A program made the translations under genes and the position numbers. This document shows positions 437-51,035 of a stretch of DNA of 64,000 bases, piece after piece (position 1 is the stretch's first letter; each line of letters opens with the position of its first letter). The notes beneath the pieces are model-generated. The model saw only the letters and a program-made list of their open reading frames with translations. It had not been told where the DNA came from and ran no database searches. The stretch covers positions 1-64,000 of the IMG/VR virus record IMGVR_UViG_3300026521_000471; one strand, given 5' to 3'.

Positions 437-949
437 ATGGCTACAAAAGTTCACGAAGATTTAACTGAAAATGAAAAATTAGATACAGTTGAAGTGGAAG
501 AAAGAGAGCAACCAGATGCCCCTGATGAAATTACAAAACTTAAAGATAAAGTTAAAGAGTTAGAAGATGAAAATCTAAGAACTCATGCTGAATTTCAGAA
601 TGTGAAGAAAAGACTTGAAAAAGAAAAGTTACAAGCTATCAAACATTCACATGAAAAGTTTTCATTGGATTTACTTGAAGTGTTAGATACTCTTTACTTA
701 GCAGAAACGGCTATTAAAGATGAAAAAGAAAAAGAAGGTATTTCTAATACAATTAAAAAATTAGAAACGGTTTTTAAAAAATATAATATTACAGAAACAC
801 TTTATGATATTTTTGATCCAAATGACCACCAAGCAATTCAAACAGTTGAATCTGATAAAGAAAGTGGTGAAATTGTAGAAGTACACCGTAAAGGTTATAA
901 AATCCATGATAAAATTTTAAGACCTGCTATGGTTTCTGTTGCGAGTTAA
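437..949 (+). CDS. grpE: GrpE nucleotide exchange factor
   Basis: LRTHAEFQNVKKR, LLEVLD, FDPNDHQA, GYKIHDKILRPAMVSV motifs; AAGGAG RBS. Confidence 0.95.
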   Translation: MATKVHEDLTENEKLDTVEVEEREQPDAPDEITKLKDKVKELEDENLRTHAEFQNVKKRLEKEKLQAIKHSHEKFSLDLLEVLDTLYLAETAIKDEKEKEGISNTIKKLETVFKKYNITETLYDIFDPNDHQAIQTVESDKESGEIVEVHRKGYKIHDKILRPAMVSVAS

Positions 950-1161: not shown

Positions 1162-1980
1162 ATGAAAGAATTATATAAAACATTAGGTGTTCAGGAGAAT
1201 GCTACTGAACAAGAGATTAAGAAAGCATATAGAAAGTTAGCCAAACAGTATCATCCTGATAAGTGTAAAACTCCTGAGTGCGAGGAAAAGTTTAAAGAAA
1301 TCAACGCAGCTCATGAGGTTCTTTCTGATAAAGAAAAGAGAGCACAATACGATCGAGTAGGTGATGCTGCATTTGGACAGGGTGGCTTTCATCAGTATTC
1401 TCAACAGCATGCTGATGTAGACATTAGTGATATTCTTAATCAGATGTTTGGACAAGGTGGTTTTGGGAGAGGATTTAAGTCTTCATTTGATCCATTTGGA
1501 CAGGCAGGATTTAGTAACCGACCTATAAATTTAGATAGAGTTATTAGGGTTAGGATACCATTAGAGAAAGCTATCACAGGTGGTAAAATGAACATCGAAG
1601 GTGATACAGTTACTATCCCAAAAGGTGTTGGTCAGGGAACTAAATTAAGAGTTAAGGGGAAAGGTCATTCTCACGAAGGGAAAACTGGTGATTTGTACAT
1701 TCAGCTTGTAATTTCACCAGATATGAACTTTGATTTAGAGGGGAATACAATACATACTTCTTTAACTCTTAATATCAAAGAAGCAATCTTTGGGAGTTCT
1801 AAAGAAATTGATTTGTATGGTGAAAAGATAAAAATCAAGACCCCTAAAGATATTAAGTATGGACAACAACTTAGAGTAGCTGGAAAAGGCTTAAAAGGTG
1901 GAAACCTAATAGTACATGTAATTTATGAGTTACCTAAATCAACAGAAATTAAAGAATCTGATTTAAATTTTATAAAATAG
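1162..1980 (+). CDS. cbpA: DnaJ-family co-chaperone, class B (CbpA-like, no Zn finger)
   Basis: J-domain with HPD ([14 protein letters not shown]), G/F-rich linker, C-terminal domain GDLYIQL; no CxxCxGxG repeats. Confidence 0.85.
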
Positions 1981-4321: not shown

Positions 4322-4663
4322 ATGTACTATGAAACACATATTACTTACAATAAACCTCTTTCACATATACGTAATCTACTACCAAATTTAAAATCGACAA
4401 AGCAACAAATTATTTCTGTAAAAATTATTAAAACTGAATCAATGACAGAAAATAATAAAGGTGTTTATTGTGTATTAAAAGATTATAATTTTGAAACTAT
4501 TGGTTTTATATCGACTACTCGCAAAGCTGCTTATGATATAGCACTTAAACATTGTGTACTTCCAGAAGAGAATAGTAGACTAATATATGATTTTAAAGCT
4601 ATGGATGATAGAAAAGAAATTTTAGAGACAGTTTCTAAAGATTTTCCAGAGTTATTAATATGA
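4322..4663 (+). CDS. small protein with PE-tail (FPELLI)
   Basis: Terminal motif; its C-terminal ~25 aa resemble the next ORF (F.A.DD.....L..(V/I)S..(F/Y)PEL). Confidence 0.7.
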   Translation: MYYETHITYNKPLSHIRNLLPNLKSTKQQIISVKIIKTESMTENNKGVYCVLKDYNFETIGFISTTRKAAYDIALKHCVLPEENSRLIYDFKAMDDRKEILETVSKDFPELLI

Positions 4664-6574: not shown

Positions 6575-6575
6575 T

Positions 6576-6893
6576 TTACTCGTTATTCTCTGAAGCTGTT
6601 GGAGCCTGAAATTTATCTATTTTCATATACTCGATATAATATTTTTTTATACCATTAACTTCATCTTTTTCATTTTCAAATCCTGCATCAGTAATAGAAA
6701 ATTTATTCATTGGGTTATTCTCTAACTCTCTTAGTGTAAAATTATCTAGTTTTATATACAATCCATCATCATCATCAAATTTTACTTCTGGTGCTTCTGA
6801 GTTAAAAATTCTTTCTAATTCATTTTTAACCATATCGATTTTAATGAAGTTATTTGGATAAATTTTTGTTTCTAGTAGATCTTTTAATTTCAT
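6576..6893 (-). CDS. putative late protein with MKLKDLLE leader
   Basis: AAGGA RBS; GATAAATA at 6912-6919 (minus); leader resembles those of 13283 and 13658. Confidence 0.65.
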   Translation of the reverse strand: MKLKDLLETKIYPNNFIKIDMVKNELERIFNSEAPEVKFDDDDGLYIKLDNFTLRELENNPMNKFSITDAGFENEKDEVNGIKKYYIEYMKIDKFQAPTASENNE

Positions 6894-6917
6894 ATTATTT
6901 CCTTTTTCTTTTATTTA

Positions 6918-7442
6918 TCAAAATACAAATATATCTTGGACATCTTTTGGTAAATATTGTGGATCATCTGTCAATTCATAAAGAATTAAATCTAATTCAT
7001 TTTTAGGTTTGTTCATTATAGATGAAAAATGTTCATAAAATTCACTACCATATTTTTCTAAAGTATCTACAAATAATAATAGTTTTCCTCCACCCATATA
7101 ATCCATTTCTAATTCATTATTTTTAAATCCTGAACTTACAATAATTGTTAAATCTGCATCTAATATATTAAAATTATTAAGATATTCTTCATCAAATTTA
7201 ATATCGTAAGGGTTATATAAATCTCTAATTAATACATTGATATTATCATATACATTATCTATATTTAAACCTATATACCAACTGATAGGTTCATTGACAT
7301 CTTCAAAATACATTTCACTATCATAGTTTGCTTCATATTTTTCAGCTATATTTTGAAAGATTTTATCTAGTTGTTTTTTTACAGGATTAGATGACTTTTC
7401 CAGCCAATTACTTAATTTTTCTATATCGTTCATACTTAACAC
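6918..7442 (-). CDS. protein with second tail family (YELTDDPQYLPKDVQDIFVF)
   Basis: C-terminus aligns with 10238..10996; AATAAATA upstream. Confidence 0.7.
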   Translation of the reverse strand: MLSMNDIEKLSNWLEKSSNPVKKQLDKIFQNIAEKYEANYDSEMYFEDVNEPISWYIGLNIDNVYDNINVLIRDLYNPYDIKFDEEYLNNFNILDADLTIIVSSGFKNNELEMDYMGGGKLLLFVDTLEKYGSEFYEHFSSIMNKPKNELDLILYELTDDPQYLPKDVQDIFVF

Positions 7443-7502
7443 CTTATCTATTTTTAAGTATTTATTATGTATAATTGATAAAATAAATAAAAAGGATAAA
7501 AT

Positions 7503-7829
7503 ATGTGGACATCGGAAAGAATTAAATTAACTGATAATTCTATGCATTTAGTTTCAAGGTTGATTATATGGTTTTTATTTTGGGAATTTATTTTTAGTAT
7601 TGTATTTTTAATTAATGGTAATGCTGACTTTATAGGATTTGGCCTGATTCTAATAACGATTGTTGGTGAATATATTTTAGCAAAGACTAGCCCCAGTAGA
7701 GTTCCAGTTGAGGTATCAAATTATATTGTTTCACTTATCAAAAATAAACCTGCTGTAGTTACCTACTATCTTCCTGATGGTGTTGAAAAAGATGAAGAAG
7801 ATATGAAAAAAAGAATTTATAAACTATGA
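7503..7829 (+). CDS. membrane protein
   Basis: Two hydrophobic helices; AAGGA RBS. Confidence 0.65.
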   Translation: MWTSERIKLTDNSMHLVSRLIIWFLFWEFIFSIVFLINGNADFIGFGLILITIVGEYILAKTSPSRVPVEVSNYIVSLIKNKPAVVTYYLPDGVEKDEEDMKKRIYKL

Positions 7830-8257
7830 GAGAATTTATACCATTTGTTAAAGATATTGAAAAAGGTGTAGATTATTTTTGGGTTAGTTTAAAAGATGGA
7901 TGTTTTTATAGAATTAGATTAAATTCACTTACTTCACAAGATAACTACGATATGAGAATAATCGAATTAATAGATATTGGATATTATACTGATAAACCTA
8001 TGGAAGAATTATTGAGTATAAAATCATTTCATAAAAATGAGTTACAAGTACATTATTCATATGATGATGCAAAATTAAATTATCTCCTTTATGCCATTAC
8101 TAATAATATACTATTTGAATTTGAAAAGATGATCGATATAAGTTTTGAGTTGTATGTTATACTAATAAAACGTCCGGAAGTCTATATAAAATATATCGAT
8201 AAACTGATGGTATCTAGTATTTTTAAAACTATGTTAGAAGGTAAGTTTAAGCGATAA
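7826..8257 (+). CDS. hypothetical protein (internal RPEVYI motif)
   Basis: ATGA overlap. Confidence 0.65.
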   Translation: MREFIPFVKDIEKGVDYFWVSLKDGCFYRIRLNSLTSQDNYDMRIIELIDIGYYTDKPMEELLSIKSFHKNELQVHYSYDDAKLNYLLYAITNNILFEFEKMIDISFELYVILIKRPEVYIKYIDKLMVSSIFKTMLEGKFKR

Positions 8258-8420
8258 GTGCTATATAAATAGCCAATAGTAATAAAGCTATACTGTTTAT
8301 ACTTAGAACCACAATTATTATTTTTATACTTTTTTCTAATTGTTCTGCTGTGCTAGTATCTATATTCATTTTTTCTAATTCATCCTTGATTCGTTGTTGT
8401 AATTGTGCCATTTTATACCC

Positions 8421-8678
8421 TTAAATAAAAAATTCGGGATATTTCTTTATCCCTGTATCTATCAAATATTTATCAGATTTTTTAATAAAATAAAACCCTT
8501 TTTTATAGCTCTTAGCAAGGTAACTATAAAATTCACTTTCTATATTAGTTTCAAATTCTTGAATATTATCAAAATTATGAGTAATATTGAAAACATTTAT
8601 ATATGGTTCTTTCTTATTATCAATATCTATACGTATTTCCATATCACTACCATACTTTAGTTTTATAAACCATTTCAT
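8421..8678 (-). CDS. small protein with PE-tail (YPEFFI)
   Basis: Terminal motif; coupled array. Confidence 0.7.
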   Translation of the reverse strand: MKWFIKLKYGSDMEIRIDIDNKKEPYINVFNITHNFDNIQEFETNIESEFYSYLAKSYKKGFYFIKKSDKYLIDTGIKKYPEFFI

Positions 8679-9037
8679 ATGAATAGCTCTGGAAATTTAT
8701 TAATTAGATAATATTTATTTTTATTTATGATTGAATATTTCCAATCCAAATAAATAGCTTCCATATAAATCAATGATAGAATATCATCTTCCCCTCGTTT
8801 TTTTAAAAGACCTGTTTCTAAGAATCTTTTTAGTCGAATTTGTTTTTCTAATGATGTAGTCTGTTCGATAATATTAAAGTGTTCATCGAGAGTAATAAGA
8901 GTTAGTTCATAGACACTTTTATCCATATCAAGTAATTCTTGCTTTATACTAGTATTTGATATATCTTGAATAAAAGCCTCTTTATCATCTTCCGTCATAG
9001 AATTATACAGTCGTCTAATACGTTTTAAAAGAATCAT
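8675..9037 (-). CDS. small protein with PE-tail (FPELFI)
   Basis: Terminal motif; coupled array. Confidence 0.7.
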   Translation of the reverse strand: MILLKRIRRLYNSMTEDDKEAFIQDISNTSIKQELLDMDKSVYELTLITLDEHFNIIEQTTSLEKQIRLKRFLETGLLKKRGEDDILSLIYMEAIYLDWKYSIINKNKYYLINKFPELFI

Positions 9038-9327
9038 ATAAAATCCTCAGGACACATATTTGCAGCAGTATTTATAAACGGTTTAAGAGTTCTAATAGCA
9101 TCTCTTGACATATTATTTTGTCGTTTATATAATGCTGCAATTATTTTATGAAATTCATTTTCTTCTTCAATTTTTAAAACTTGATATACTACTGTATCAA
9201 ATCCTCCACCAGGATTAAAATGATTTTCTTTTCTTTTATAATTTGTTTCGTATGGTATTTTTGTTATATAAAGATCTAAAATAAAATCAGATTTACCAAT
9301 AACTGCGATTTTCCATAATTTTTTCAT
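9034..9327 (-). CDS. small protein with PE-tail (CPEDFI)
   Basis: Terminal motif; coupled array. Confidence 0.7.
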   Translation of the reverse strand: MKKLWKIAVIGKSDFILDLYITKIPYETNYKRKENHFNPGGGFDTVVYQVLKIEEENEFHKIIAALYKRQNNMSRDAIRTLKPFINTAANMCPEDFI

Positions 9328-9626
9328 AAGTAATACTCCGGAAATTTATTTAGAGGATATGTTTTATCAAATTCATATTTTAGATTTTCAAGCGTATTGA
9401 CTAGCAAAGTATATTTTGTTGCTATTGAATTATTTAATGTTGGACAATCTAAAGACCCTTTAGCAATTTTTTGCTGAAACGTATATTCTTTAAGAAAACG
9501 ATTAGGTGACATAATTTGTAAGACATCACCCAAATCTTTTTTTTCATATAGAAAATATTTCATATCTATTAATTGTGCATACTTATCTAAAATTAAAAAT
9601 GGTAGATCTATTTTATTTTCTTTCAT
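9324..9626 (-). CDS. small protein with PE-tail (FPEYYL)
   Basis: Terminal motif; coupled array. Confidence 0.7.
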   Translation of the reverse strand: MKENKIDLPFLILDKYAQLIDMKYFLYEKKDLGDVLQIMSPNRFLKEYTFQQKIAKGSLDCPTLNNSIATKYTLLVNTLENLKYEFDKTYPLNKFPEYYL

Positions 9627-9641
9627 AATTCATTCCTATTT

Positions 9642-10022
9642 TTAAACATATAATTCTGGATACTTTTCAGAAAATATTTTATAATGTTTTGTGAAATTAG
9701 TTTGTTTATCAAAATCTTCTAATCGTTTTTTAAGTTCTATATATTTTTTACGTTGTAGTTTAGTAGCATAAGCTTGAGCTTTTTCAAATTCATCTTCAAA
9801 GAAAAAAAGACCAGCACTTGCATCACAACCAAAACCACCTTCAAAATCTAAGAATTTTTTCTTTTTTGTTTCACTAATTGCTATAGTAACAGATGATTTA
9901 TAAGGGAATTGATAATCATCAACATGATGACGATATTTAAGATCCTTTGGAACAATATAAAAAGTGTATGTGCCTAATTTGAGTTCTCTTTTGAGTCTAT
10001 ATTTAAATTCGTGAAAGTTCAT
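9642..10022 (-). CDS. small protein with PE-tail (YPELYV)
   Basis: Terminal motif. Confidence 0.7.
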   Translation of the reverse strand: MNFHEFKYRLKRELKLGTYTFYIVPKDLKYRHHVDDYQFPYKSSVTIAISETKKKKFLDFEGGFGCDASAGLFFFEDEFEKAQAYATKLQRKKYIELKKRLEDFDKQTNFTKHYKIFSEKYPELYV

Positions 10023-10023
10023 C

Positions 10024-10185
10024 CTAACCCCTTTTATAAATAATGAAGATAACTACAATAACCAATGTTGTTATTAAGATTGCAGGTACACCAGCGGCTT
10101 GTGAAGTAACCAATTCAGCTTCACTAACTTCAGCATTATAAAAAATATTAGCAGGGTGCCATGAAAAAGCTGGATTAGTTATCAT
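10024..10185 (-). CDS. 53-aa single-TM protein (not in ORF track)
   Basis: MITNPAFSWHPANIFY...PAILITTLVIVVIFIIYKRG; AAGGA RBS; first gene after the minus-strand class I promoter. Confidence 0.55.
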   Translation of the reverse strand: MITNPAFSWHPANIFYNAEVSEAELVTSQAAGVPAILITTLVIVVIFIIYKRG

Positions 10186-10208
10186 AATTATCCTTTTTAA
10201 TTTGGATA

Positions 10209-10230
10209 ATTATAACATAATGAGTCTTAA
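10209..10230 (-). promoter_or_regulatory. class I promoter TTAAG-N11-TATAAT (minus strand)
   Basis: Reverse complement reads TTAAG ACTCATTATGT TATAAT; heads the minus-strand PE-tail array. Confidence 0.7.
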
Positions 10231-10237
10231 GGGTAAA

Positions 10238-10996
10238 TTAAAAGATAAATAAATCTGTTACTATTTTTGGACGATATTTTTCATCATTTGTTTCTAAATA
10301 ATATTCACCTAGTAATATATGATTATCATTTAACGATTTAATTTCATCCAAAACCCATGTACGTTTTGAACTATTTGATGGGAGACTTTTATAAATTATC
10401 TCGAGCACTTCTAAATTTTTACTAAATTTCTTAATTAGGCTAATGATGATATTAGATTCATTTAAAGAAATTAATAATGGTATTATACTTTTAGAAATAT
10501 TTCCATTTTTAACAATAGTGCTTAAAATATATCCCTTATCATTAGAAAAGAATGCATCATCTATAGCTCTTTTTAAAAATATTTCCATTTTAGTTTCAGA
10601 TAATGAAGGGGCTATTTTTTGATAAAAATGTATAAGAAAATCAGATTTAGGATTTTGACTTGGATATGCTGAGTTATCATTTTCTATTTTAGATTTTCTT
10701 TCTTCGTCTGCTTTTGAAAATAAGTTATCTATAAATTTTTTAAATTCGTTATCATTTAATCTTTCTATAAAAGGAATTGCGTCATAATTGCTAATTAAAT
10801 CATAAGGGACTTCTTCTATAAACCAATCTTTTACTTTTTTAGAGAGTTCATTATTTTTTAGAATTTTTGAAAAACTATAAAAGTCATCAAATTCAATAGC
10901 CTTTTGTAAAAGTTGATTTTGTTCATCGTCTGAAATTTTACCAATATTGTCTAATTCATAAGAAAAATTCATATCATTTAGTTTGTCTATATTCAT
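10238..10996 (-). CDS. protein with second tail family (YLETNDEKYRPKIVTDLFIF)
   Basis: C-terminus aligns with 6918..7442; AATAAATA at 11018-11025. Confidence 0.7.
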   Translation of the reverse strand: MNIDKLNDMNFSYELDNIGKISDDEQNQLLQKAIEFDDFYSFSKILKNNELSKKVKDWFIEEVPYDLISNYDAIPFIERLNDNEFKKFIDNLFSKADEERKSKIENDNSAYPSQNPKSDFLIHFYQKIAPSLSETKMEIFLKRAIDDAFFSNDKGYILSTIVKNGNISKSIIPLLISLNESNIIISLIKKFSKNLEVLEIIYKSLPSNSSKRTWVLDEIKSLNDNHILLGEYYLETNDEKYRPKIVTDLFIF

Positions 10997-11081
10997 TTTT
11001 TAATCCATTTTTATTTTTATTTATTATTGTAAGAATTATAAAAAATGTAAAATAGAGAATATAACTAAAATAGGAGATTAT

Positions 11082-12120
11082 ATGACAAAAGAGGAATTAT
11101 TAAAAAGAAGAAAGGAAATTAAGTCCCAGATGTGGGATATTGAGAAAATATTAAAAGATAAGACATTCGTATCATCAGTTGACTTCGCTTCCATAAACTA
11201 ATGTGGCTTCTCTTGGTAACAAGGGAATGAAACAGAGTGTAAACTGCTGGAAACCCCTAAAGCTCGATTTCCTATTTTTAAAATAGGTGTGAGAACAGAA
11301 ACAATTATCGAGATGACTTAAAAGTGGAAACAGATTTGGGTTGGGTTAATTAAGTTTAACTAAAAATGGGCAATCAGCATCCAAGCTCTCTACCGGTTAG
11401 ATTAATACGTGAGTATTATTAAAGAGAGAAGGTTCAGAGACTATAATCACTCAGTCCTTAATTAAATTTGAAGGATTATTGTATAGTCCAGCGAAAAAAA
11501 TAATTACTAATTATTTCTGTGAAAGCAGATATTTTCGTAGGTACCCGAGCGTGATACGCCTCCTTAATGCCTCTATTGAAAATTTAGTTGGGTTTTTAGA
11601 TAATGACCCAATTGCATATAGAAAATTAGGGCTATCTAAAACTGTTAAGAAAGCAAAAGATATTTCAAAAGAACTAGTACGAACTGATTTACGGGAAAGT
11701 GATTATGTTAAATTTGTAGGTAAGAATGAAGATAAAATTTCATTACGTTTAGATTTATATAATGGAAAATATGCTGAGGCTGATATTACAGAAATTACAG
11801 AAACACCATTTGAACGATATTTTTTAGCAATATTATTTGGTGATGATGAGCAACTATTTAAGTTTCAAGATCAGACTTATACTGCTCAAGAATTTCAGGC
11901 TTTTCTTAAAGAGAATAATTTAAGTTTAAGTGGTAGTGGAGCAATCTATAAAGCCTATAAAATGGGTGATGATAAGAATAACCAAGGTATTATTCCTAGT
12001 TATTTAGAATACCTATTTTTGGAGCGAAAAAAAGTGAAGAAGGTGATGTTTACGCATTACCGACATAAAATTTTATTACAAAAATTTAAAAATGCTATGG
12101 AAGAAGATGGAAGATGGTAA
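11082..12120 (+). CDS. family B DNA polymerase middle fragment, two exons: join(11082..11194,11541..12120), 230 aa
   Basis: AGGAG RBS; splicing restores motif A FVSSVDFASMYPSVIRLLN; GIIPSYLEYLFLERKKVKK is the pre-motif-B fingers helix; no exonuclease, motif B or motif C in this ORF. Confidence 0.85.
11195..11540 (+). ncRNA. group I intron (346 nt, no ORF) in PolB motif A
   Basis: Exon-terminal U in P1 (CCAU/GUGG, U.G), terminal G, P3 GAGTG/CACTC, P4 TGCTG/CAGCA, GTTCAGAGACTA and ATAGTCC (P7); removal restores frame and motif. Confidence 0.92.
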
Positions 12121-12130
12121 GGGTTAAAAA

Positions 12131-12460
12131 TTGTTTCAAGAAGATGAAGAAGATTTATCTATATTAGAATTTTATAAACGTTTACCATATAATAAAATGA
12201 AAGAATGTGAAATTTTTATAACACCTGAGAAAATATATGGTATTCAATATGCTGATGATGCAGATACACGTATTTTGGCGGAATCATTAAATATTCTCAA
12301 AACATTAAAATCTAATGAGCTTAAAGACAAAATTGAACTCCATAGGACTGAGGGTGTATGGCGAGAGTTTTATACGTTCAAAAATGTAGTAAAAGCAATA
12401 AGAGAATATTTGCAGTTGCGACCAAATTTAATAGAAGAGTATCCAGAATGTATGATTTAA
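12131..12460 (+). CDS. small protein with PE-tail (YPECMI)
   Basis: Terminal motif. Confidence 0.7.
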   Translation: MFQEDEEDLSILEFYKRLPYNKMKECEIFITPEKIYGIQYADDADTRILAESLNILKTLKSNELKDKIELHRTEGVWREFYTFKNVVKAIREYLQLRPNLIEEYPECMI

Positions 12461-12690
12461 ACAATTTAAATAAAGGTGATATAATTGAATTTCAAATGTC
12501 CTTTGGAAAACTCCACGGTGTTATAGAAGTTAAAACAGAAGATTTAATACATGTTCGTAGTTTTTCTTTGGATAAAACTGCACATCGATGGTTTATGTTT
12601 TATCAAGAAACTTTTAAACATGTAAAAAATAATTATGGGGCTCAACTTGAAGACGACTTCATTACATCAAATCCTGAGAGGTTTATATGA
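12448..12690 (+). CDS. small protein with PE-tail (NPERFI); start moved from 12358 to ATG 12448
   Basis: GAAGAG upstream of 12448; avoids a long overlap. Confidence 0.65.
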   Translation: MYDLNNLNKGDIIEFQMSFGKLHGVIEVKTEDLIHVRSFSLDKTAHRWFMFYQETFKHVKNNYGAQLEDDFITSNPERFI

Positions 12691-12938
12691 AGAATATATA
12701 TGAAATAGCCAATGAATGTTATCCTATGTTATTAGTACACCCTGCAACAAACTGGGAACAGGAAATTCATAATTATAGAGCTCTAATTATCATAGAGATT
12801 TCAAAGCATTACCCTGATATTCTTGATAACTGTGAAGATTGCGTTAAAGTTATTCAAAATTCTGATGTACTAGAATATAAATTTAGTGATAAATTTATAA
12901 AACGGATTTTAGAAAAGTATCCTGAAGCATTAATATGA
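12687..12938 (+). CDS. small protein with PE-tail (YPEALI)
   Basis: Terminal motif; ATGA overlap. Confidence 0.7.
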   Translation: MKNIYEIANECYPMLLVHPATNWEQEIHNYRALIIIEISKHYPDILDNCEDCVKVIQNSDVLEYKFSDKFIKRILEKYPEALI

Positions 12939-13246
12939 AGTGTTCTGAAGAAGAAGCGATCGCTGTTAATTTTTTTAGAAAATTACCACCGGAAGTAAAG
13001 GTTGAAATTGATGAATATTTTTTACCTGAATTATCTGATGATACAAAAAATGCCCTTTTAAAAAATATTACTTTAATTGGTGAAGTTTTTAAAATGACAC
13101 CTAATTTAGCAGAATATTATACAAAATACGCTCAAGATTGTGATTACTTTCGATTGTTAGGATTTTGGGAAGAAATTAGTACTGTACTTGTAACTATATT
13201 TAATTCAACTGATTACTATGAAAGATACCCAGAATATTTGGTTTAA
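12935..13246 (+). CDS. small protein with PE-tail (YPEYLV)
   Basis: Terminal motif; ATGA overlap. Confidence 0.7.
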   Translation: MKCSEEEAIAVNFFRKLPPEVKVEIDEYFLPELSDDTKNALLKNITLIGEVFKMTPNLAEYYTKYAQDCDYFRLLGFWEEISTVLVTIFNSTDYYERYPEYLV

Positions 13247-13657: not shown

Positions 13658-14182
13658 ATGCAATTAGAAGATTTAAATAACGAATTACTATTAGAAAAAA
13701 CTTTTTATAAAATCAATAAAACCCTTAGTAAACATTTAGATAAACTGGAAGATGATGCGAGAGAAGTAAATTTGAATGTAGTTAATCTTTTAGTTAAAAA
13801 AGCAGAAAAGTTTTTGGATGATTTGGATGAAAAACTTAAAGATAAAAATGCTCCTATTCTTGAGTTAGACGACCTTATGGCAAAATATAAGAAACCTTTA
13901 CTTTTTTTCAAAAAACGTTTTGAAGATTTAGTTGATCAATATAGCGACAATGCATTTCAACGAGAAATAATGACTGAGGTTAGAATAATACTTACTAATT
14001 TAATAAATAGAATCGATTCAAGCCTAACTGGATTTGAAGGTGAAATTAAAAGAAAAATTAAAGCTACGGCACAAGAAGTATCTTCAGAAGTTACACAAAA
14101 AGGAAAAGGTATTAGAGTTCCACACGGTCTGGCACAGGATTTACATTCAAAAAAACATTATATTCATAAAGAGAAAAAATAA
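13658..14182 (+). CDS. putative late helical protein, MQLEDLNNELLLE leader
   Basis: AGGAG RBS; similar leader and composition to 13283. Confidence 0.7.
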   Translation: MQLEDLNNELLLEKTFYKINKTLSKHLDKLEDDAREVNLNVVNLLVKKAEKFLDDLDEKLKDKNAPILELDDLMAKYKKPLLFFKKRFEDLVDQYSDNAFQREIMTEVRIILTNLINRIDSSLTGFEGEIKRKIKATAQEVSSEVTQKGKGIRVPHGLAQDLHSKKHYIHKEKK

Positions 14183-17727: not shown

Positions 17728-18390
17728 ATGAAAAAATATCCAAGAACATTTCATTTTCAGTTTTCTCCAGAAGTACATGATGATGATAAAGTTATATCTA
17801 TGAGATATCTTGGAAATTTTCTACAAGACGAAATAGTTATCCTAGAAAAATTAGATGGTGCTAATAGTTGTCTGAAAGGTCATCAAGGTGTATTTGGAAG
17901 AAGTCATACTTTACCAACTAAAGAACCTTGGTACGACCACCTAAAAGGTTTATACTATTCTAAATTGGATAACCTGAATCCGGACTATTGGTATTTTGGA
18001 GAAAATACCTATGCTATTCATAGCATTAAATATACTAATATGGATAGTTATTTTTATCTATTCGCTATCTATGATACAGTTAATAAAATATGGCTGTCTT
18101 GGGATGATTTAGTAGAAGAAGCAAAAAGAGTTGATATACCTACTGTACCTGTATTATTTAGAGGTACAGTTATCTCAATGGCTGAAGTAAATAAATGGAT
18201 GGATAAACACATTACCGATGAATCTCAATTAGGTGGTGAATTAGAAGGTTTTGTTATGAGAGTAACAAAAGCAATCCCAGGAGATAAATTCAATGAGTTT
18301 GTAGCAAAATACGTTAGAAAAGGTCATGTGCAGACTGATGACCATTGGACAAAAAATTGGAAACCTCAAACTTTAAAGGTAAATAAATGA
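17728..18390 (+). CDS. ATP-dependent RNA ligase family protein
   Basis: KYPRTFH, motif I EKLDGAN, FGEN, FYLFAI, motif IV EGFVMR, motif V AKYVR. Confidence 0.85.
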   Translation: MKKYPRTFHFQFSPEVHDDDKVISMRYLGNFLQDEIVILEKLDGANSCLKGHQGVFGRSHTLPTKEPWYDHLKGLYYSKLDNLNPDYWYFGENTYAIHSIKYTNMDSYFYLFAIYDTVNKIWLSWDDLVEEAKRVDIPTVPVLFRGTVISMAEVNKWMDKHITDESQLGGELEGFVMRVTKAIPGDKFNEFVAKYVRKGHVQTDDHWTKNWKPQTLKVNK

Positions 18391-18635
18391 GTGCATCGGA
18401 CTACTTAGATCCAGAAATTAAAGATTTTGTTAGAGGGTATTCTAGAATAAATGTTGAATTAAAAAGAATACCTCCTAAGCTTTTAAAAACTAAGTTGGTT
18501 TCTTCATATGAGTCTGTTTCTTCAGCATCATATTTAGGTGATATTGAAAAAAATAATATGTTATGGTGTATAACTCAAGCTATTGAGGAATTGCATAATG
18601 AGATTTCAGAAGTTTATCCAGAGATTTGTATATGA
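18387..18635 (+). CDS. small protein with PE-tail (YPEICI)
   Basis: Terminal motif. Confidence 0.7.
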   Translation: MSASDYLDPEIKDFVRGYSRINVELKRIPPKLLKTKLVSSYESVSSASYLGDIEKNNMLWCITQAIEELHNEISEVYPEICI

Positions 18636-18898
18636 ATAATTTATCAAAAATAAAAGAGAAAGTTGAAAATGAATTAGAGAAGGTATCTAGAGAGATCTTC
18701 GATATGAAGATAGTAAATGATATGACAATAAGATTCTTTCAGATGAATTATACTAAATGTGAAATTAAACCTGATTATATTAAATGTATGAAATGTCACA
18801 ATATGGAAGATCCTTTTAAATCAACCAATATAGAGATAATTCTTTCAGACGCTTTTATAAATGAGTTAAAAAAACATTACCCGGAAGATCTAATATGA
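18626..18898 (+). CDS. small protein with PE-tail (YPEDLI)
   Basis: Terminal motif; likely start ATG 18632. Confidence 0.7.
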   Translation: MYMNNLSKIKEKVENELEKVSREIFDMKIVNDMTIRFFQMNYTKCEIKPDYIKCMKCHNMEDPFKSTNIEIILSDAFINELKKHYPEDLI

Positions 18899-19161
18899 AC
18901 ACTTTAAAAGAATACGTGAATTATTGTGCACAACTTTTTAAAGCCTTTAGATTTAAAGAGACTGAAATTAGTACTATATTTTTATCAAAATTACAAAAGA
19001 AGTATCCATTAACTAAAAATCTATCAAAAGATGATTTTGAAATACATTTTGAATACTGTATTAGAGAATGGGATGACGTTAAAACTAGACATTGCTTTAT
19101 TGATATTAAACACTCTCTAGTAGATAAAATTTCTGAGGAGTACCCCGAATCATGCATATAA
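18895..19161 (+). CDS. small protein with PE-tail (YPESCI)
   Basis: Terminal motif. Confidence 0.7.
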   Translation: MNTLKEYVNYCAQLFKAFRFKETEISTIFLSKLQKKYPLTKNLSKDDFEIHFEYCIREWDDVKTRHCFIDIKHSLVDKISEEYPESCI

Positions 19162-19406
19162 AAGATTTTATAGATAGTATGGAACATGCACTACATCAAG
19201 ATAATATAATATCTAAGGAAGAAGTGGTTATAAAATACGTAGAAGCCGTATATCCAAAATTAAAAAATAAAATTCCTAAAAATGATATAATTATTACTGA
19301 AAATAAAATAACATTAAACTTTATCCCTCCAACAAAATATACTGTATCATTTAGAGAAAAGTTTTATGACGCATTTAAAATACATTATCCTGAATACATG
19401 ATTTAA
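19152..19406 (+). CDS. small protein with PE-tail (YPEYMI)
   Basis: Terminal motif. Confidence 0.7.
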   Translation: MHIKDFIDSMEHALHQDNIISKEEVVIKYVEAVYPKLKNKIPKNDIIITENKITLNFIPPTKYTVSFREKFYDAFKIHYPEYMI

Positions 19407-21814: not shown

Positions 21815-22450
21815 ATGGAAATGATAGACGTTTTAATCTATGAAATTACTAAATGTCACAAACTAATAAATTTTGATGAAGTAATCACTATTACACCTTA
21901 TGGTTCTAAAGTTTATGGTACTACTACTGAGAAATCAGATTTAGATTTTGTAGTAATTCATTCAGGAACAAACGATGAGCTTTATACCTCTGATTTGATC
22001 GATGTTCATTTCATCTCATTAAACACTTTTAAAGAGTTATTAGACAAACATGATATTATGGCTTTAGAAGTTTATTATTGGAATAAACAACATGTTCCAA
22101 AATCTAAAATTTTAGATTTAGTGGAATTTAAATTAGATAAAGTGAAACTTAGAAAATCTATTTCTGCCATTGTTAATAATTCATGGGTTAAAGCTAAAAA
22201 GAAGATGACATTACCAGAGGAAAATTCTTATATTGGTTTGAAGTCGTTATTTCATTCTTTCAGAATTTTAGATTTTGGTATCCAATTAGCAAAAAGTAAT
22301 AAGATTAATTTCTCATCTAAAAATCAATTTTGGGAAGAATTAAAAGAGTTATGGAGTGCTACTCAAGAGTGGGATAATTTCTATAAGCAATATAAACAAG
22401 AGCACAACCATTTAATGACTGAGTTCAGAAAAGTAGCACCAAAGGAATAG
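21815..22450 (+). CDS. Pol-beta superfamily nucleotidyltransferase
   Basis: YGSKVYGT...SDLDFVV motif, helical C-terminal domain KSLFHSFRIL. Confidence 0.85.
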   Translation: MEMIDVLIYEITKCHKLINFDEVITITPYGSKVYGTTTEKSDLDFVVIHSGTNDELYTSDLIDVHFISLNTFKELLDKHDIMALEVYYWNKQHVPKSKILDLVEFKLDKVKLRKSISAIVNNSWVKAKKKMTLPEENSYIGLKSLFHSFRILDFGIQLAKSNKINFSSKNQFWEELKELWSATQEWDNFYKQYKQEHNHLMTEFRKVAPKE

Positions 22451-22452
22451 AT

Positions 22453-22806
22453 ATGATATATTCAAAAAAAGAGATAGATAATATGATAACCAATAGAAAA
22501 ATACGTGGGGCTAAATTTGATCTTGAACTAGTTCCAAAAGAATTAGCTAGTGAATGGTTGATTGATTTTGAAAATGGTTTTGTTCTTGCAGATACTGAAT
22601 TTGTTAAAGATACAAGACATAGAATATCAGAGTCCTATATTATTAAGAAAATAAGTGAAGAATATCCAGAAATTTTAGTTGCTGCAAATGAAACATTAAT
22701 TAACGGTATTTCTTTAAGTGATATGATTATGAATGAGTGTATAAGAAGTTCGCCTATTCCTAGACAGGAAGATGTAAACAATTATTGTGAAAATTGTACT
22801 GCTTAA
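22453..22806 (+). CDS. hypothetical protein (internal EEYPEILV plus extension)
   Basis: ORF with RBS. Confidence 0.6.
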   Translation: MIYSKKEIDNMITNRKIRGAKFDLELVPKELASEWLIDFENGFVLADTEFVKDTRHRISESYIIKKISEEYPEILVAANETLINGISLSDMIMNECIRSSPIPRQEDVNNYCENCTA

Positions 22807-22813
22807 TAATGAT

Positions 22814-22835
22814 TTAAGGTTTATTATTATATAAT
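22814..22835 (+). promoter_or_regulatory. class I promoter TTAAG-N11-TATAAT
   Basis: Motif match. Confidence 0.7.
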
Positions 22836-22865
22836 TACTTATCTAAACAACAAAAAGGAGATGAG

Positions 22866-23132
22866 ATGACTGATTTAAATTCACCTCAAACTTACGTTGA
22901 AGCTATTAGAAAGGCTTCGGATGAAATGAATATTAGTGCTTTAATTACTATTCATGATGAGTTGGTTAAAACAAATATAACAACAGTAAGTAAAGTTATG
23001 AAAGTGATTAAAAAAGACCCTGTTGATTATGAAGTATTTGCTAATGCTTCTGCAATGTCAAAAAATGCAAAAAATGGTGTTTTTAAATTGATTGTCGCTC
23101 AAGCTCTTCAAAGAGAAAATATAGGAGGCTAA
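22866..23132 (+). CDS. hypothetical protein
   Basis: AAGGAG RBS. Confidence 0.65.
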   Translation: MTDLNSPQTYVEAIRKASDEMNISALITIHDELVKTNITTVSKVMKVIKKDPVDYEVFANASAMSKNAKNGVFKLIVAQALQRENIGG

Positions 23133-26841: not shown

Positions 26842-28137
26842 GTGGAAAATATTGATATAGGTATTATTGATGTAGAATCTTTAAAAACCTTAAATAAAAT
26901 TTTAGAATCAAAAAAAGAATATATTATAAATTATTGGCTAGATGATGAAAAACTCAAGCCAATTTTTGAGATGTTGGAAATAGAAAAAGAAACATTTAAA
27001 AGCAAATACGCATATCATATTTTTCATCATTTTCAATCCATTGATTATGATAATATGTATTTTAAAACATATATCGATGAAATGGAAGACAAACAGCATT
27101 TAATAAAATATTTTTACCGATTAATCGCTCATCTAAAGAATAAGATTATATTATTTTTAATACAGTATAACATAGATAACAATGATAAAATATTTATGGA
27201 TGATTCACTGCTATATACGATTGATAATGCTATATCTGAATTATTAGATTCTATAACAAAACATCTTCAAAGAGATTATACTGCAAATACAAAAAAATTA
27301 AAGATATTAGAAAATGCTGCATTAGTTACTAGAACTGATAAAGACGGTAGCATATTATTTATGAGCCCACCATTATTAGAGTTACTAGGATATTCAGAAG
27401 AGGAAATGCTTGGAGCAGGTTTTAATAAAATCAGACATCCCAGAGTTTCTTCTAAATTTTATGAAAAACTATGGAGGACATTAAAATCTGGTAAACCTTT
27501 CAAAGGGACTATTAAAAATTTAACTAAGAATAGAAAAGAAGTAATATTTCATACACAAATTGTTCCTGATTTTAATTTTGATGGAGAAATAGTTGGTTAT
27601 ACAGCTATAAAAACAGATTTAACCGATAAAACAAGAGCAAGAACTGACACATTAACAGGTCTTTTAAATCGTTCAGCATTTAATGATCGATTATCTGAAC
27701 TTATAGATAGATATAACAATTTTCATATTCCAGTTTCTTTAATAATGATTGATATTGATTATTTTAGTGAAGTAAATAATAACTACGGTCATATTACTGG
27801 TGATAAAACTCTAAAACATTTTGTTAAACTAATTAAAGAGATAATTAGACCTACTGATACATTTGCAAGATGGGGAGGGGAAGAATTTATTATAATTCAA
27901 AATAATACATTAGATAATTCTATTAAAACTGCTGAAAGAATAAGAAAACATATAGCAGAAAGCACGTTCCCAGAAGTAGGACAAAAAACATGTAGTCTAG
28001 GTGTGGCAGAATTTAATAATAGTTATGCAGATATAGATTCATTTATAAATGAACTTGATAAAGCATTATATTATTCAAAAGAACATGGACGTAATAAGGT
28101 CTCATACGTAGTTAAAAATGGTATAGAATCTGTTTAA
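26842..28137 (+). CDS. PAS-GGDEF diguanylate cyclase
   Basis: PAS (FNKIRHP...LWRTL), DTLTGLLNR, DIDYFSEVNNNYGHITGD, I-site RPTD, active site RWGGEEF. Confidence 0.93.
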   Translation: MENIDIGIIDVESLKTLNKILESKKEYIINYWLDDEKLKPIFEMLEIEKETFKSKYAYHIFHHFQSIDYDNMYFKTYIDEMEDKQHLIKYFYRLIAHLKNKIILFLIQYNIDNNDKIFMDDSLLYTIDNAISELLDSITKHLQRDYTANTKKLKILENAALVTRTDKDGSILFMSPPLLELLGYSEEEMLGAGFNKIRHPRVSSKFYEKLWRTLKSGKPFKGTIKNLTKNRKEVIFHTQIVPDFNFDGEIVGYTAIKTDLTDKTRARTDTLTGLLNRSAFNDRLSELIDRYNNFHIPVSLIMIDIDYFSEVNNNYGHITGDKTLKHFVKLIKEIIRPTDTFARWGGEEFIIIQNNTLDNSIKTAERIRKHIAESTFPEVGQKTCSLGVAEFNNSYADIDSFINELDKALYYSKEHGRNKVSYVVKNGIESV

Positions 28138-36813: not shown

Positions 36814-38268
36814 ATGAATGAAAATGATGTTAAAGAAGAAATTAAAGAAGCTTGGAAAGATTTAAAAAACGGTACAAAAGTTAAAGCTAAGCTTACTGAA
36901 AAAATGGATGAGAAGCTCGACGGTTTAGTAGCAGCAGCAAAAGCTGGAAATTGGAAAACTCAGCTGGAAGAAGCAATAGTACAGATGATTACTTATAATT
37001 ATTCAAGTAATGAAAGTTTAATGTGGTATGGACATTTAGTAACTCAATGTGAAATAAAAAGAGATTTAACTATGCCAAGTCCTGCTGGGGTAAGATTTAT
37101 GTTTAATAAATACGAGATGTTTATTAATCCTTTACTTTTTGGTTTATATTCAACCGATGAACAAATTGCTATATTGAAACATGAAATGTTACATATTATC
37201 AATTTGCACATTGTAAGACAAAAAGATAGAGACCATAAAAAATGGAATTATGGTACTGATTTATCTATCAACCAATTAATCCCAAACATTCCTGAAGATG
37301 GATTACAACCTGAAAAATTTGATTTTGCAAAAAACCTTAATGCAGAACAGTATTATGATATGATACCTACAAACTATGAGAGTGAAGAACCTCAAGAAGG
37401 TAATGAAGACGGTGAGGGTGGTGGAAGTTGTTCTGCACAAGGTTCCGGAGATGGAGAGCCACAAGATGGTGATGGTTCTGGAAACGGTGATGGTTCTGAT
37501 GTAATTGATGATGAGAAAAAACTTAAAGATCTAATCTCCCAAGCATTAAATGCAGCTCAAGAAGGAATGATTGGTGATCATGGTAAGTGGCAAAATTCTG
37601 AAGGTGATGAACAGGCCGCAAAAGAAATTACAAGACAGATGTGTGAAACAGCTACTAATAAATCCAGAGGTATGACACCAGGTGAAGTAGAAGGAGCAAT
37701 CCAATTACTTAAAATGCAGGAGCAAATTAACTGGAAGAAAGAGCTGAGAAGAATTGTTGGTAATAGAAAAGCATTTTCTAAACTTACAATTAAGAAAAAT
37801 GATAGAAGATTTCCAGGTCGTAAGGATTTAAGAGGTAAAACAAAAGATCATACAAAAGATATTGTAGTTATCTTAGATGTATCGGGTTCTATGAGTGATG
37901 AGGAAGTTCTCTATGGTTTAAATGAAATTAAGGCTATTGCAGAAAAAGCTAGAGCTGGGGTTACTATTATTCAAGTTGATACAGAGCCAAAAATTGTAGA
38001 AGATTTTGATCCAAAAGCAAAAACTTTTAATCGTAGAGGTTATGGTGGTACTTATATGACTCCTGGAATTGAAATGATTAAGGAACAGAAATTAAAATGT
38101 GACTGTATTTTGTGTATAACTGATGGTTACATTGAATCAACTTTTGATATTGATTTACCAAGAGTACCATTTATTTTCTTAGTTACACAAGATGCAGATA
38201 ATTTATCTATTGATGTAGGTTCATATCCGAGAATGAAAAAACATACATTGAAAATTGGTGATAAGTAG
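36814..38268 (+). CDS. DUF2201-type HExxH metallopeptidase plus VWA domain protein
   Basis: LKHEMLHI, WNYGTDLSIN, G/D-rich linker, MIDAS DVSGS, GYGGT, TDGY. Confidence 0.9.
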   Translation: MNENDVKEEIKEAWKDLKNGTKVKAKLTEKMDEKLDGLVAAAKAGNWKTQLEEAIVQMITYNYSSNESLMWYGHLVTQCEIKRDLTMPSPAGVRFMFNKYEMFINPLLFGLYSTDEQIAILKHEMLHIINLHIVRQKDRDHKKWNYGTDLSINQLIPNIPEDGLQPEKFDFAKNLNAEQYYDMIPTNYESEEPQEGNEDGEGGGSCSAQGSGDGEPQDGDGSGNGDGSDVIDDEKKLKDLISQALNAAQEGMIGDHGKWQNSEGDEQAAKEITRQMCETATNKSRGMTPGEVEGAIQLLKMQEQINWKKELRRIVGNRKAFSKLTIKKNDRRFPGRKDLRGKTKDHTKDIVVILDVSGSMSDEEVLYGLNEIKAIAEKARAGVTIIQVDTEPKIVEDFDPKAKTFNRRGYGGTYMTPGIEMIKEQKLKCDCILCITDGYIESTFDIDLPRVPFIFLVTQDADNLSIDVGSYPRMKKHTLKIGDK

Positions 38269-38524
38269 AGTTATTATGTGGGCTTATAAGTTTACAGATT
38301 CAAGAGGAAATGATTACTATGAGTTTCCTTTTGAAATATCTAGTTCAACATTTCTTAATTCAAATGAATATCAAATAGTAAATACTGAAAGAGAAGCTGT
38401 TAAAGAATTTAAAAAAGCAATTGATTTCAATATACCATATAAAGCTCATTATGAAGATATGCAAAAACTTAATAAAGAATTGGCTAAATTATATCTTAAA
38501 AAGTATCCGGAGATATTTATATAA
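38255..38524 (+). CDS. small protein with PE-tail (YPEIFI)
   Basis: Terminal motif. Confidence 0.7.
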   Translation: MVISRVIMWAYKFTDSRGNDYYEFPFEISSSTFLNSNEYQIVNTEREAVKEFKKAIDFNIPYKAHYEDMQKLNKELAKLYLKKYPEIFI

Positions 38525-38865
38525 TGTATCATTTTAAATTAAAACTTAGAGATATTCACAAAAATGCGTATAGATCATTTTTATTTCCAGAAAAAGCACC
38601 TAAAAATTCTACTAGTCATTGTGCGAAAATCAATTCGTTATATACAGAAGGTTGGTTTGCTGATAAATCATTGATAGAATCTGAAATCCACTTTATTAAA
38701 TCTGTTAAATTTTTTTTAAATGGTGCAATTAAAGATTTAAAGAAAAATAACACTTATACAGGGTGGGATGAATCATATCTTAAAGATGATGTTGCATTTT
38801 TAGAAAATGTATGGAAATTAACAATTCAAAAATATGCGGATAAATATCCGGAGCTAGTATTATGA
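38524..38865 (+). CDS. small protein with PE-tail (YPELVL)
   Basis: Terminal motif; TAATG overlap. Confidence 0.7.
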   Translation: MYHFKLKLRDIHKNAYRSFLFPEKAPKNSTSHCAKINSLYTEGWFADKSLIESEIHFIKSVKFFLNGAIKDLKKNNTYTGWDESYLKDDVAFLENVWKLTIQKYADKYPELVL

Positions 38866-39101
38866 GTTTTATCAAATTCACATTTAAAAATAACAGCTAT
38901 GCTATAGGACGTTTATTTTCAAAGATTGGAAAAGATAACTGGGCAAATATTGAAATAGTTAAGCCGTATAATGGTAGAAATGAGACTTTAAAAAAATATT
39001 ATACTAAGGGTAGAACATTTCAAGCTGATACATCTAGTACTTCAGATTATGTTAAAACTGCATTTATAGATCCAAAGTCTCACCCAGAATATTTTATTTA
39101 A
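38862..39101 (+). CDS. small protein with PE-tail (HPEYFI)
   Basis: Terminal motif; ATGA overlap. Confidence 0.7.
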   Translation: MSFIKFTFKNNSYAIGRLFSKIGKDNWANIEIVKPYNGRNETLKKYYTKGRTFQADTSSTSDYVKTAFIDPKSHPEYFI

Positions 39102-39106
39102 AAAGG

Positions 39107-39469
39107 TTGTTGATGTATTTCTCATATCAAGCACATACTTTAGATGGAAAATCTCTTAAAATTTATTTACCATTACCAACTAAAAAATCACAATATGAAG
39201 ATAGACTGAAATTTTATAAACAAATAGATGATAGAAAATTATATGTCGTGAAAGATACTAAAGATATTATTAGAGAATGTCATATACATAATACTTTAAA
39301 AGAATCAATAAATTATATAAGAAAAGATCTAATATATTCGATTGAATGGATAAGTGATGATAAAAATGCACCTCCTGGTAATCCTGATGTTTATGTGGCT
39401 AAATGTAGAGATGCTTTAACTGAATTAGAAAATAAATATATCAATAAATTCCCGGAGATATTCTTATGA
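39107..39469 (+). CDS. small protein with PE-tail (FPEIFL)
   Basis: Terminal motif. Confidence 0.7.
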   Translation: MLMYFSYQAHTLDGKSLKIYLPLPTKKSQYEDRLKFYKQIDDRKLYVVKDTKDIIRECHIHNTLKESINYIRKDLIYSIEWISDDKNAPPGNPDVYVAKCRDALTELENKYINKFPEIFL

Positions 39470-39654
39470 TTGTAGATGTAGATAAAAAGGCAATCCAACA
39501 ACAAATAAAGTTTTTAGTTAAAATAATAAACCAATATCAAAAAAGATTAGAAACTGAACCTCAATTTTTAACTAGAGAAGTTGAAGAAAATTTAGAAAGA
39601 GCTAAAGCAAAATATGATTATATTATTAAAGAATATCCAGACTTAATCATCTAG
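39466..39654 (+). CDS. small protein with PE-tail (YPDLII)
   Basis: Terminal motif; ATGA overlap. Confidence 0.7.
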   Translation: MIVDVDKKAIQQQIKFLVKIINQYQKRLETEPQFLTREVEENLERAKAKYDYIIKEYPDLII

Positions 39655-50428: not shown

Positions 50429-50713
50429 ATGAATACTAGTAGAGAAAGTTTTCAATTAGATTTAGAACGTACTACATCAACAGAATTAGAAGAAGTCGTA
50501 ATATGTTCAAAATGTAATGGTTATGGTTCTTCACAATTAAAAGGTGATTTTATTGTTTACGGGAATGATACAGATCTTAAACAAAATAATATTTGTTCAT
50601 CTTGCAATGGTACTGGAAAATTAATCAAACAAACCGTAGTATCATTTGTATCATTTGACCCAAATTTAGCAATAAAAACACATATCGTTTCAAATCCAGA
50701 AAATTTTATTTAA
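50429..50713 (+). CDS. DnaJ-type CxxCxGxG zinc-finger protein with PE-tail (NPENFI)
   Basis: CSKCNGYG, CSSCNGTG. Confidence 0.75.
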   Translation: MNTSRESFQLDLERTTSTELEEVVICSKCNGYGSSQLKGDFIVYGNDTDLKQNNICSSCNGTGKLIKQTVVSFVSFDPNLAIKTHIVSNPENFI

Positions 50714-50757
50714 TTTTAAAGTATAACATAGTATAATTAAAGAAAATAGGATTATGC

Positions 50758-51024: not shown

Positions 51025-51035
51025 GAAGGTGATTT

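Follow-up and report, generated by a model that had tools for sequence, protein, structure and literature searches.

A C-terminal tail on unrelated proteins of hydrothermal-vent jumbo phages, a probable docking or addressing peptide

Short terminal peptides that address otherwise unrelated proteins are already known. In bacteriophage T4 the capsid-targeting sequence of IPI, IPII, IPIII and Alt is N-terminal and about 10 residues long, and gp21 cleaves it at L/I-x-E. Encapsulin cargo peptides and the ClpX-binding tail of SspB are short C-terminal peptides on flexible linkers, and in the poxvirus ankyrin/PRANC (F-box-like) families variable N-terminal repeats are joined to a constant, helical, hub-binding C-terminal domain of ~60 residues. 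Here we analyze a C-terminal peptide, termed tail-2, that was noticed on two genes (A and B) of the window, i.e., the first 64 kb of a single viral contig (G000; 224,467 bp, 27.9% guanine plus cytosine (GC); JGI Ga0256828_1000004) of a jumbo phage from a hydrothermal vent. Neither the tail-2 motif nor the family that it defines is described in Pfam, PHROGs or the literature searched.

Tail-2 proteins are encoded in G000, in a related jumbo phage from the same sample (G001; 289,880 bp) and in a third virus (G002; 306 kb), all three contigs being fragments (CheckV 85-87%). Judged from their sequences, G001 and G002 are T4-type phages; both encode the gp23 capsid protein, the gp21 prohead protease and the late sigma factor gp55. 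In T4-type phages the internal proteins are unrelated products of hyperplastic loci that a common terminal peptide brings into the head for co-injection. Tail-2 is likewise a terminal peptide on unrelated proteins, with a T4-type head and gp21 in G001 and G002 and with most members late-type by promoter motif. In contrast to the T4 signal, tail-2 is C-terminal and 12-20 residues long, its logo has no L/I-x-E spacing, the family is far larger and some members are early-type. As with encapsulin cargo and SspB, a C-terminal peptide would address diverse proteins, there to a shell interior or a protease; the consensus, however, is unrelated, and neither encapsulin nor ClpX was identified on these contigs. 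Like the poxvirus proteins, the tail-2 proteins form a large, fast-turnover family with a constant C-terminus, and some of them have variable repeat bodies, but their constant part is a peptide, most bodies are not ankyrin, and the host is a bacterium, with no SCF ligase. No PRANC or F-box domain was matched in 49 tail-2 members.

Tail-2 in the window and in related phages

The translations of 6918..7442 (A) and 10238..10996 (B), made with translation table 11 as for all open reading frames (ORFs), end in the peptides quoted in a first-pass annotation of the window (Table 1). The shorter form of A is preferred because its orthologues begin at the internal ATG. That annotation held the two bodies to be unrelated, both genes to be antisense to a neighbor and AATAAATA to lie just upstream of each, and all of this was borne out: (i) BLASTP found nothing once the last 22 aa had been removed, the final ~20 aa alone being alignable; (ii) the + strand carries the neighbors at 7503.. 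and 11479..; and (iii) the motif closely precedes both starts. Both proteins are acidic (net charge -20 for A and -9 for B), and neither they nor the other five G000 members matched a Pfam or PHROG family above threshold. In a syntenic sister contig of 221.5 kb from a sister sample, found by a word-indexed search with protein B, the orthologue of A is 88% identical and keeps the tail with one D/E change, and that of B is 75% identical and keeps a tail that reads ...NNEKYRPKFITDLFVF. Vent and epibiont metagenome DNA runs from two further studies also contain A and B intact. Of the interval 6500-11100, a biofilm metatranscriptome run covered, by two contigs, only 7974-8369 (ORFs 7826..8257 (+) and 8247..8411 (-)), with A and B outside.

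Seven G000 ORFs, named A to G, end in [DNET][ILMV]F[ILVM]F, compared with 0.022 on average and never more than 1 after shuffling (500 shuffles per protein); internal matches to the pattern numbered 2 in 68,762 aa. A six-frame search of G000 with a 26-column hidden Markov model (HMM) of the tail recovered the same seven ORFs and nothing further at E<=10. The profile scan of the genome and its relatives, which the first-pass annotation had proposed as a check, also gave 32 matches at E<=1 in G001, and an ORF listing over 233-289 kb of that phage contains at least 42 ORFs (101-513 aa) with tail-2. The earlier statement that only two examples exist is thus correct for the 64-kb window, but not beyond it. 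The 42 G001 members end ...Y-x-x-T-x-D-x-x-[FY]-L-P-x-[ED]-[VI]-K-D-I-F-[IV]-F, and nearly all of them lie in one same-strand array (237-283 kb, ~10-nt spacers). About 10 members form tandem runs in G002, where the ending is one residue shorter, ...[FY]-L-P-E-K-[IVL]-K-N-L-F-F. When the tail was back-translated into a degenerate DNA pattern and sought across IMG/VR, nine strict matches were obtained in one virus, G001. Among 241 million metagenome records, several matches per contig to the tail pattern occurred only in these phages and their sister-sample counterparts, and other contigs had single, background-level matches; one such match, locus L137 of a human-gut metagenome assembly, was left out of the analysis.

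The logo of 49 members (7 from G000 and 42 from G001) is strongest at positions -12 to -1, [FY] L P x [ED] [VI] [KQR] D [IL] F [IVL] F, with a weaker Y-x-x-T-x-D before this core. Phenylalanine is invariant at -3 and occupies -1 in 47 of the 49 members, and in all of them the tail is strictly C-terminal with its reading frame kept. On this evidence tail-2 marks, at the sequence level, a large undescribed family of otherwise unrelated proteins.

With megablast, 8 kb of the window had no match among GenBank phages. IMG/VR locus searches gave zero relatives with proteins B and C, and with rIIA only distant phages (GC 36-55%) that are without the tails. That G000 and G001 are two parts of one genome was ruled out, the same region of family B DNA polymerase (PolB) being present in both.

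The bodies that carry the tail are diverse. Members range from 101 to 534 aa, and when the 49 proteins were compared without their tails, not one of 1,176 pairs was similar at BLASTP E<1e-3. Ankyrin repeats (Ank_2 and related; best E 1.8e-11) are present in 6 of the 42 G001 members, and Pfam matched none in the seven G000 members. Protein C is placed near LRV/HEAT-repeat clusters in a language-model atlas (0.92), which is a lead only. For one 317-aa protein of G001, AlphaFold (AF2) gave an all-helical repeat model, i.e., an alpha-solenoid, with a predicted local distance difference test (pLDDT) score of 80.9, and a fold search with it returned only generic armadillo/HEAT/TPR solenoid resemblance (E>=0.026). 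Along the modelled tail pLDDT falls to 68, 51 and then below 50 over the last 17 residues, and the tail stands off the body; in the model, such a free, unpacked tail behaves as expected of a docking peptide held by a short linker. Net charge is negative in all seven G000 members (-7 to -20) and in most G001 members (range -42 to +14), and neither signal peptides nor convincing membrane segments were found in the 49 proteins.

Both the body and the codon data bear on whether the tail is a functional peptide at all. Tandem arrays are typical of duplication, some G002 neighbors are recent paralogues that are similar beyond the tail upstream, and E and F of G000 align across ~56 aa; on these grounds the members could be ordinary, very diverged paralogues, with the tail as a last trace of ancestry, a structural element and no signal. 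The spread of lengths, the lack of any similar body pair, the variety of body types (ankyrin in six, solenoid, others) and the low-confidence tail away from the body all speak against this, and the ordinary divergence between orthologues (75-88% identity) shows that hypermutation of the bodies is not at work. The first-pass annotation had allowed that the pair might prove to be full-length paralogues without further members; instead, many more members exist and no full-length alignment between members was obtained. We therefore consider ordinary paralogy improbable, and the family, on its sequences, is modular rather than made of recent copies. A DNA or RNA element, such as a terminator, a promoter, a recombination site or a mobile cassette, that lies at the 3' ends of the genes and is translated by chance would suit the promoter-like sequences downstream of B and F. 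It is contradicted by free synonymous variation among the G000 tails (CCA/CCT, GTC/GTA, TTA/CTC/CTT, TTT/TTC), by the occurrence of all three stop codons and by unrelated DNA 3' of them, which together place the constraint on the peptide, and also by the frame and terminal position, which are always retained; its probability is close to nil. In G001, 33% of same-residue codon pairs use different codons. Orthologues of the 317-aa G001 protein with 34-36% identity still end D-[IM]-F-L-F, and invariant columns make up 5 of 12 positions in the tail vs. 66 of 306 in the body.

The early or late class of these genes was read from promoter motifs alone. The T4 late consensus TATAAATA is present in 24 G000 upstream regions vs. 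1.8 expected, and AATAAATA is a one-base variant of this class. Genes A to D all lie behind [TA]ATAAATA motifs, with AATAAATA preceding A, B and the operon of D, and TATAAATA the operon of C. Sub-operons of the G001 array start after TATAAATA (239837, 254690, 258030 and 267101) and are without sigma70-type sites. Sigma70-type consensus promoters (TTGACT-17-TATAAT, extended -10) of G000 cluster at 190-222 kb, where F and G are driven directly by such promoters and E via the rIIA operon. The first-pass designation of the genes as late-type thus fits A to D and the G001 sub-operons, and gp55 is available in G001 and G002, but it does not fit E, F and G, which are early-type. By motif, most tail-2 genes appear to be late-type, but not all. 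About 20 near-identical sigma70-type promoters (TTGACTTTTTAC...TATGTTATAAT) lie at 190000..222000 of G000 and, on the two strands, face away from a zone at about 207-210 kb; a palindrome (GATAATGATT...AATCATTATC) precedes some of them. They form a divergent early region that may contain operator sites.

Candidate receptors of the tail

We consider that tail-2 probably serves, at the C-terminus, to dock or address its bearers to a single receptor specific to the lineage; receptor binding, and which receptor is bound, are the parts that we infer. The core, [FY]-L-P-x-[ED]-[VI]-[KQR]-D-[IL]-F-[IVL]-F-COOH, is a short linear motif at the protein level. The largely unstructured tail would hang off unrelated, soluble, mostly acidic bodies, several of which are protein-binding repeat modules (ankyrin, alpha-solenoid), and would tie all its bearers to one receptor. 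Because the tail is uniform inside each genome and its G000/G001 form differs from the G002 form, this receptor would be encoded by the phage lineage or co-evolve with it. The first-pass annotation had proposed a second, late-stage sorting signal, with capsid loading or ejection as its example, parallel to the PE-tail ([YF]-P-E-x-x-[ILV]-COOH), which ends 36 mostly small G000 ORFs, and the parallel holds in that tail-2 is strictly C-terminal, shared and carried by unrelated proteins.

By analogy with T4, we tentatively place first the head interior or scaffold, with loading of the members as cargo for co-injection; this ranking rests on late-type expression, a T4-type head with its protease and the loading of T4 proteins through a shared terminal peptide. 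The phage ClpP/Hsp100 unfoldase or the DnaK/DnaJ chaperones, with the members as adaptors or timed substrates, come second as a somewhat doubtful candidate. A host hub is third and unlikely, and a PCNA-type sliding clamp is fourth and more unlikely still. Several points weigh against docking in general or the head in particular. The strong sigma70-type early promoters in front of E, F and G are awkward for pure virion loading, tail-2 is on none of the annotated virion proteins, and the T4 capsid-targeting signal is N-terminal and cleaved, whereas tail-2 sits at the opposite end and shows no obvious gp21 site. The uniformity of tails per genome could also be due to gene conversion in the arrays, and the fragmentary contigs make absences weak evidence.

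If the bodies bind targets or are timed substrates, the tail could dock them on ClpP/Hsp100 as an adaptor or degron, in a bacterial-virus analogue of the poxvirus ankyrin-PRANC proteins or of the SspB C-terminal tail. A repeat-type binding body with a free C-terminal peptide agrees with this, as do the genuine ClpP of G001 and G002 (E about 1e-63) and the 767-aa ClpA/B/C-type unfoldase gene of G001, and jumbo phages that carry ClpP or ClpS are known (PMC7824862). However, an unfoldase homologue was not found in the G002 or G000 contigs, and the tail-2 array and clpP are not gene-linked; we regard this reading as rather unlikely. Genes adjacent to clpP were rejected as ClpX, the neighbors being a topoisomerase and unknowns. 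An export signal, by which ankyrin effectors would leave the cell, is far less probable: the D-hydrophobic(4)-COOH end, the acidic bodies and the ankyrin repeats are reminiscent of substrates of type I secretion and the habitat takes in epibiont communities, but type I signals are poorly conserved compared with a tail that is sharp over 12 residues, and the only ABC ATPase, in G002, is not an exporter-sized fusion. A PDZ reader (PF13180; class II ligand hydrophobic-x-hydrophobic-COOH) had no match in G000, G001 or G002; PDZ, Hsp20 and ABC proteins were all rejected as common readers, since none is in all three phages and Hsp20 and the ABC ATPase are in G002 only.

The tail could instead tether its bearers to a PCNA/gp45-type clamp, in the way that gp43, gp33 and gp55 of T4 are held by their C-termini. 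In T4 an acidic/hydrophobic C-terminal epitope that is common to unrelated proteins, and interchangeable between them, binds the clamp (PMC2988020). Tail-2 is likewise a short, acidic and hydrophobic C-terminal peptide on unrelated proteins with a variable linker, and it occurs in T4-type phages that have gp55, a clamp-loader homologue (gp44 in G001, 6e-67) and, beside gp55, a 243-aa protein with a PCNA fold. The motifs differ, in contrast, being S-L-D-F-L-F/Y in T4 (gp43 ...ASLDFLFG, gp55 ...SLDFLYEAND) vs. K-D-I-F-I-F with an upstream [FY]-L-P in tail-2, and about 50 tail-2 bearers face three T4 clients. Moreover, the C-terminal piece of the G001 polymerase ends ...ENIAMDSLF, a different (LF) tail class, gp55 ends ...KKDRLDIAHRD in G001 and ...REKMDGYIC in G002, and it is hard to see why a replication clamp should have over 40 ankyrin/solenoid clients. 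We thus judge clamp tethering by tail-2 improbable, and keep to a docking peptide with another receptor. The predicted complex of three copies of the G001 clamp with a 40-aa tail alignment scored 0.02, which counts neither for nor against clamp binding.

A predicted sliding clamp and the LF-tail

The 243-aa protein encoded next to gp55 has a predicted PCNA/gp45-type fold (pLDDT 90.7, Foldseek probability 1.00). It belongs to phrog_12062, with 54 homologues, all called 'hypothetical', on contigs of up to 496 kb. Pfam, phmmer against the PDB and hhalign against T4 gp45 did not detect it as a clamp; by its modelled fold, it is a PCNA/gp45-type sliding clamp. No clamp family (PF09116, PF02916, PF00712, PF02768, phrog_223) had a match on G000.

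The C-terminal piece of the G001 polymerase (...AMDSLF) aligns to residues 798-897 of the 898 of T4 gp43. Because this polymerase carries the LF-tail, aligned to the end of gp43, the LF-tail is, from sequence comparison, the likely clamp-binding motif of the clade. As [ST]-[DN]-x-L-F-COOH it ends seven G000 proteins of 436-529 aa (7 vs. 1.5 shuffled), six of which are phrog_10773 paralogues, and rIIA ends in a looser ...NKELF. The gene for the family B DNA polymerase is split, its pieces lying tens of kb from one another. Inspected by eye, the G001 pieces have intein-like (Hint) halves at their ends, ...DTDS being followed by intein-like sequence and ...ILVHNS/C standing at the start of the C-terminal piece, which suggests a split-intein, trans-spliced polymerase.

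Other genes and terminal motifs, and their significance

The G000 contig is taken as truncated because its left end seems, by eye, to cut dnaK. An ORF ending at 208 of the window (...DDSDVIDAEIE) resembles the dnaK C-terminus by eye and is followed by a GrpE-like ORF (437..949, also by eye) and DnaJ (1162..1980, with a Pfam match in the sister genome); the sister contig stops at the same place. With GroEL (121726..123351) and Cpn10 these would make a full chaperone set. Genes for gp23, gp21, gp55, clamp, clamp loader, ClpP and Clp unfoldase all lacked a match on the truncated contig; rIIA, topoisomerase II, DnaB, UvsW, GroEL/ES, EF-Tu, AspRS and many RNA-repair genes are present. Cargo that is unusual in a phage comprises EF-Tu, an Alp7A-type actin, AspRS, SmpB, a tRNA cluster (about 68-84 kb) and signalling proteins, both with GGDEF/EAL/HDOD/PAS domains and of the methyl-accepting chemotaxis type.

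A transposase gene (396 aa, phrog_506) at 45833..47023 of the window is missing in another assembly of the same phage (ENA k141_105527), in which the upstream ORF has 181 aa vs. 127 aa in G000. A similar-looking transposase of equal length and identical C-terminal residues (not aligned) lies in the G001 tail-2 array (265791..266981); the phrog_506 transposase looks like an active insertion element common to two co-occurring phages.

The PE-tail is also found in G002 and in G001 (five consecutive at 237.6-239.8 kb), and because its Pro and Glu codons vary it is a protein-level motif. An N-terminal motif, M-K-[LI]-K-[DEQ]-L-[LN]-E, occurs on different proteins (69-715 aa) that often adjoin tail-2 genes, and a few proteins carry both this motif and tail-2. 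It recalls the T4 N-terminal capsid-targeting sequence with its L-x-E site, gp21 being encoded in G001 and G002.

Table 1. Coordinates of tail-2 genes and of the other features discussed
Feature	Sequence	Coordinates	Strand	Remarks
Tail-2 gene A	window	6918..7442	-	174 aa from GTG; probably 171 aa from ATG at 7433
Tail of A	window	6921..6983	-	LYELTDDPQYLPKDVQDIFVF, then TGA stop; HMM E 3.9e-12
AATAAATA motif	window	7459..7466	-	16 nt upstream of A start
Tail-2 gene B	window	10238..10996	-	252 aa
Tail of B	window	10241..10303	-	YYLETNDEKYRPKIVTDLFIF, then TAA stop; HMM E 4.0e-12
AATAAATA motif	window	11018..11025	-	21 nt upstream of B start
Tail-2 member	G000	87128..88732	+	534 aa
Tail-2 member	G000	158864..159418	-	
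Tail-2 member	G000	197838..198305	-	
Tail-2 member	G000	206338..207081	-	
Tail-2 member	G000	217292..217636	+	
Predicted clamp gene	G001	143739..144470		
Predicted clamp gene	G002	22146..22874		
LF-tail proteins	G000	97868..99421, 100580..101929, 101930..103519, 105266..106705, 112040..113350, 126668..127999, 128012..129322		
PolB piece	window	11479..12120		
PolB piece	G000	64573..65424		
PolB piece	L061	1372-2175		
PolB piece	L066	11479-12633		
PolB piece	L062	1195-2097		
PE-tail examples	window	4322..4663, 8675..9037, 9034..9327, 9324..9626, 9642..10022, 12358..13246, 18387..19406, 38255..39654, 50429..51651, 62567..63198		
N-terminal motif	window	6576..6893	-	
N-terminal motif	window	13658..14182		
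N-terminal motif	G000	67162..67398, 84984..87131, 158286..158567, 158564..158854		
N-terminal motif	G001	248604.., 249000.., 258066.., 274313.., 278018..		
N-terminal motif	G002	13125..		
Unusual cargo genes	window	42531..43682, 43739..44713, 26842..28137, 39643..41301		
Unusual cargo genes	G000	75026..77212, 94364..96214, 151851..154028, 163031..163480		

Terminal addressing peptides are a powerful organising principle, as with the PIP boxes of PCNA clients, the T4 capsid-targeting sequence and encapsulin cargo peptides. It is conceivable, although we would not rely on it as a whole, that orthogonal C-terminal 'zip codes' sort more than 80 proteins of these vent jumbo phages, the LF-tail directing its bearers to the clamp and tail-2 and the PE-tail to two other receptors, with tail-2 as a peptide that loads at least 40 unrelated effectors (ankyrin, solenoid and others) into the T4-type head for co-injection or, alternatively, as the mark of substrate receptors for the phage Clp protease. 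The Clp version, if true, would be the first bacterial-virus counterpart of the poxvirus ANK/F-box families. For the conserved 'hypothetical' family, a fold and function (PCNA-type clamp) are assigned, together with a suggested clamp-binding motif of the clade.

With about 45 kb of one genome, the tail-2 family may be the largest modular phage gene family yet. Its repeat-type, presumably target-binding bodies are wholly replaced from one related phage to the next, as is characteristic of an arsenal in an arms race. The motif offers a one-line rule to find such genes in metagenomes and a peptide handle for the receptor and, if that receptor is the head, tail-2 could serve as a natural tag by which foreign proteins are packed in T4-type capsids.

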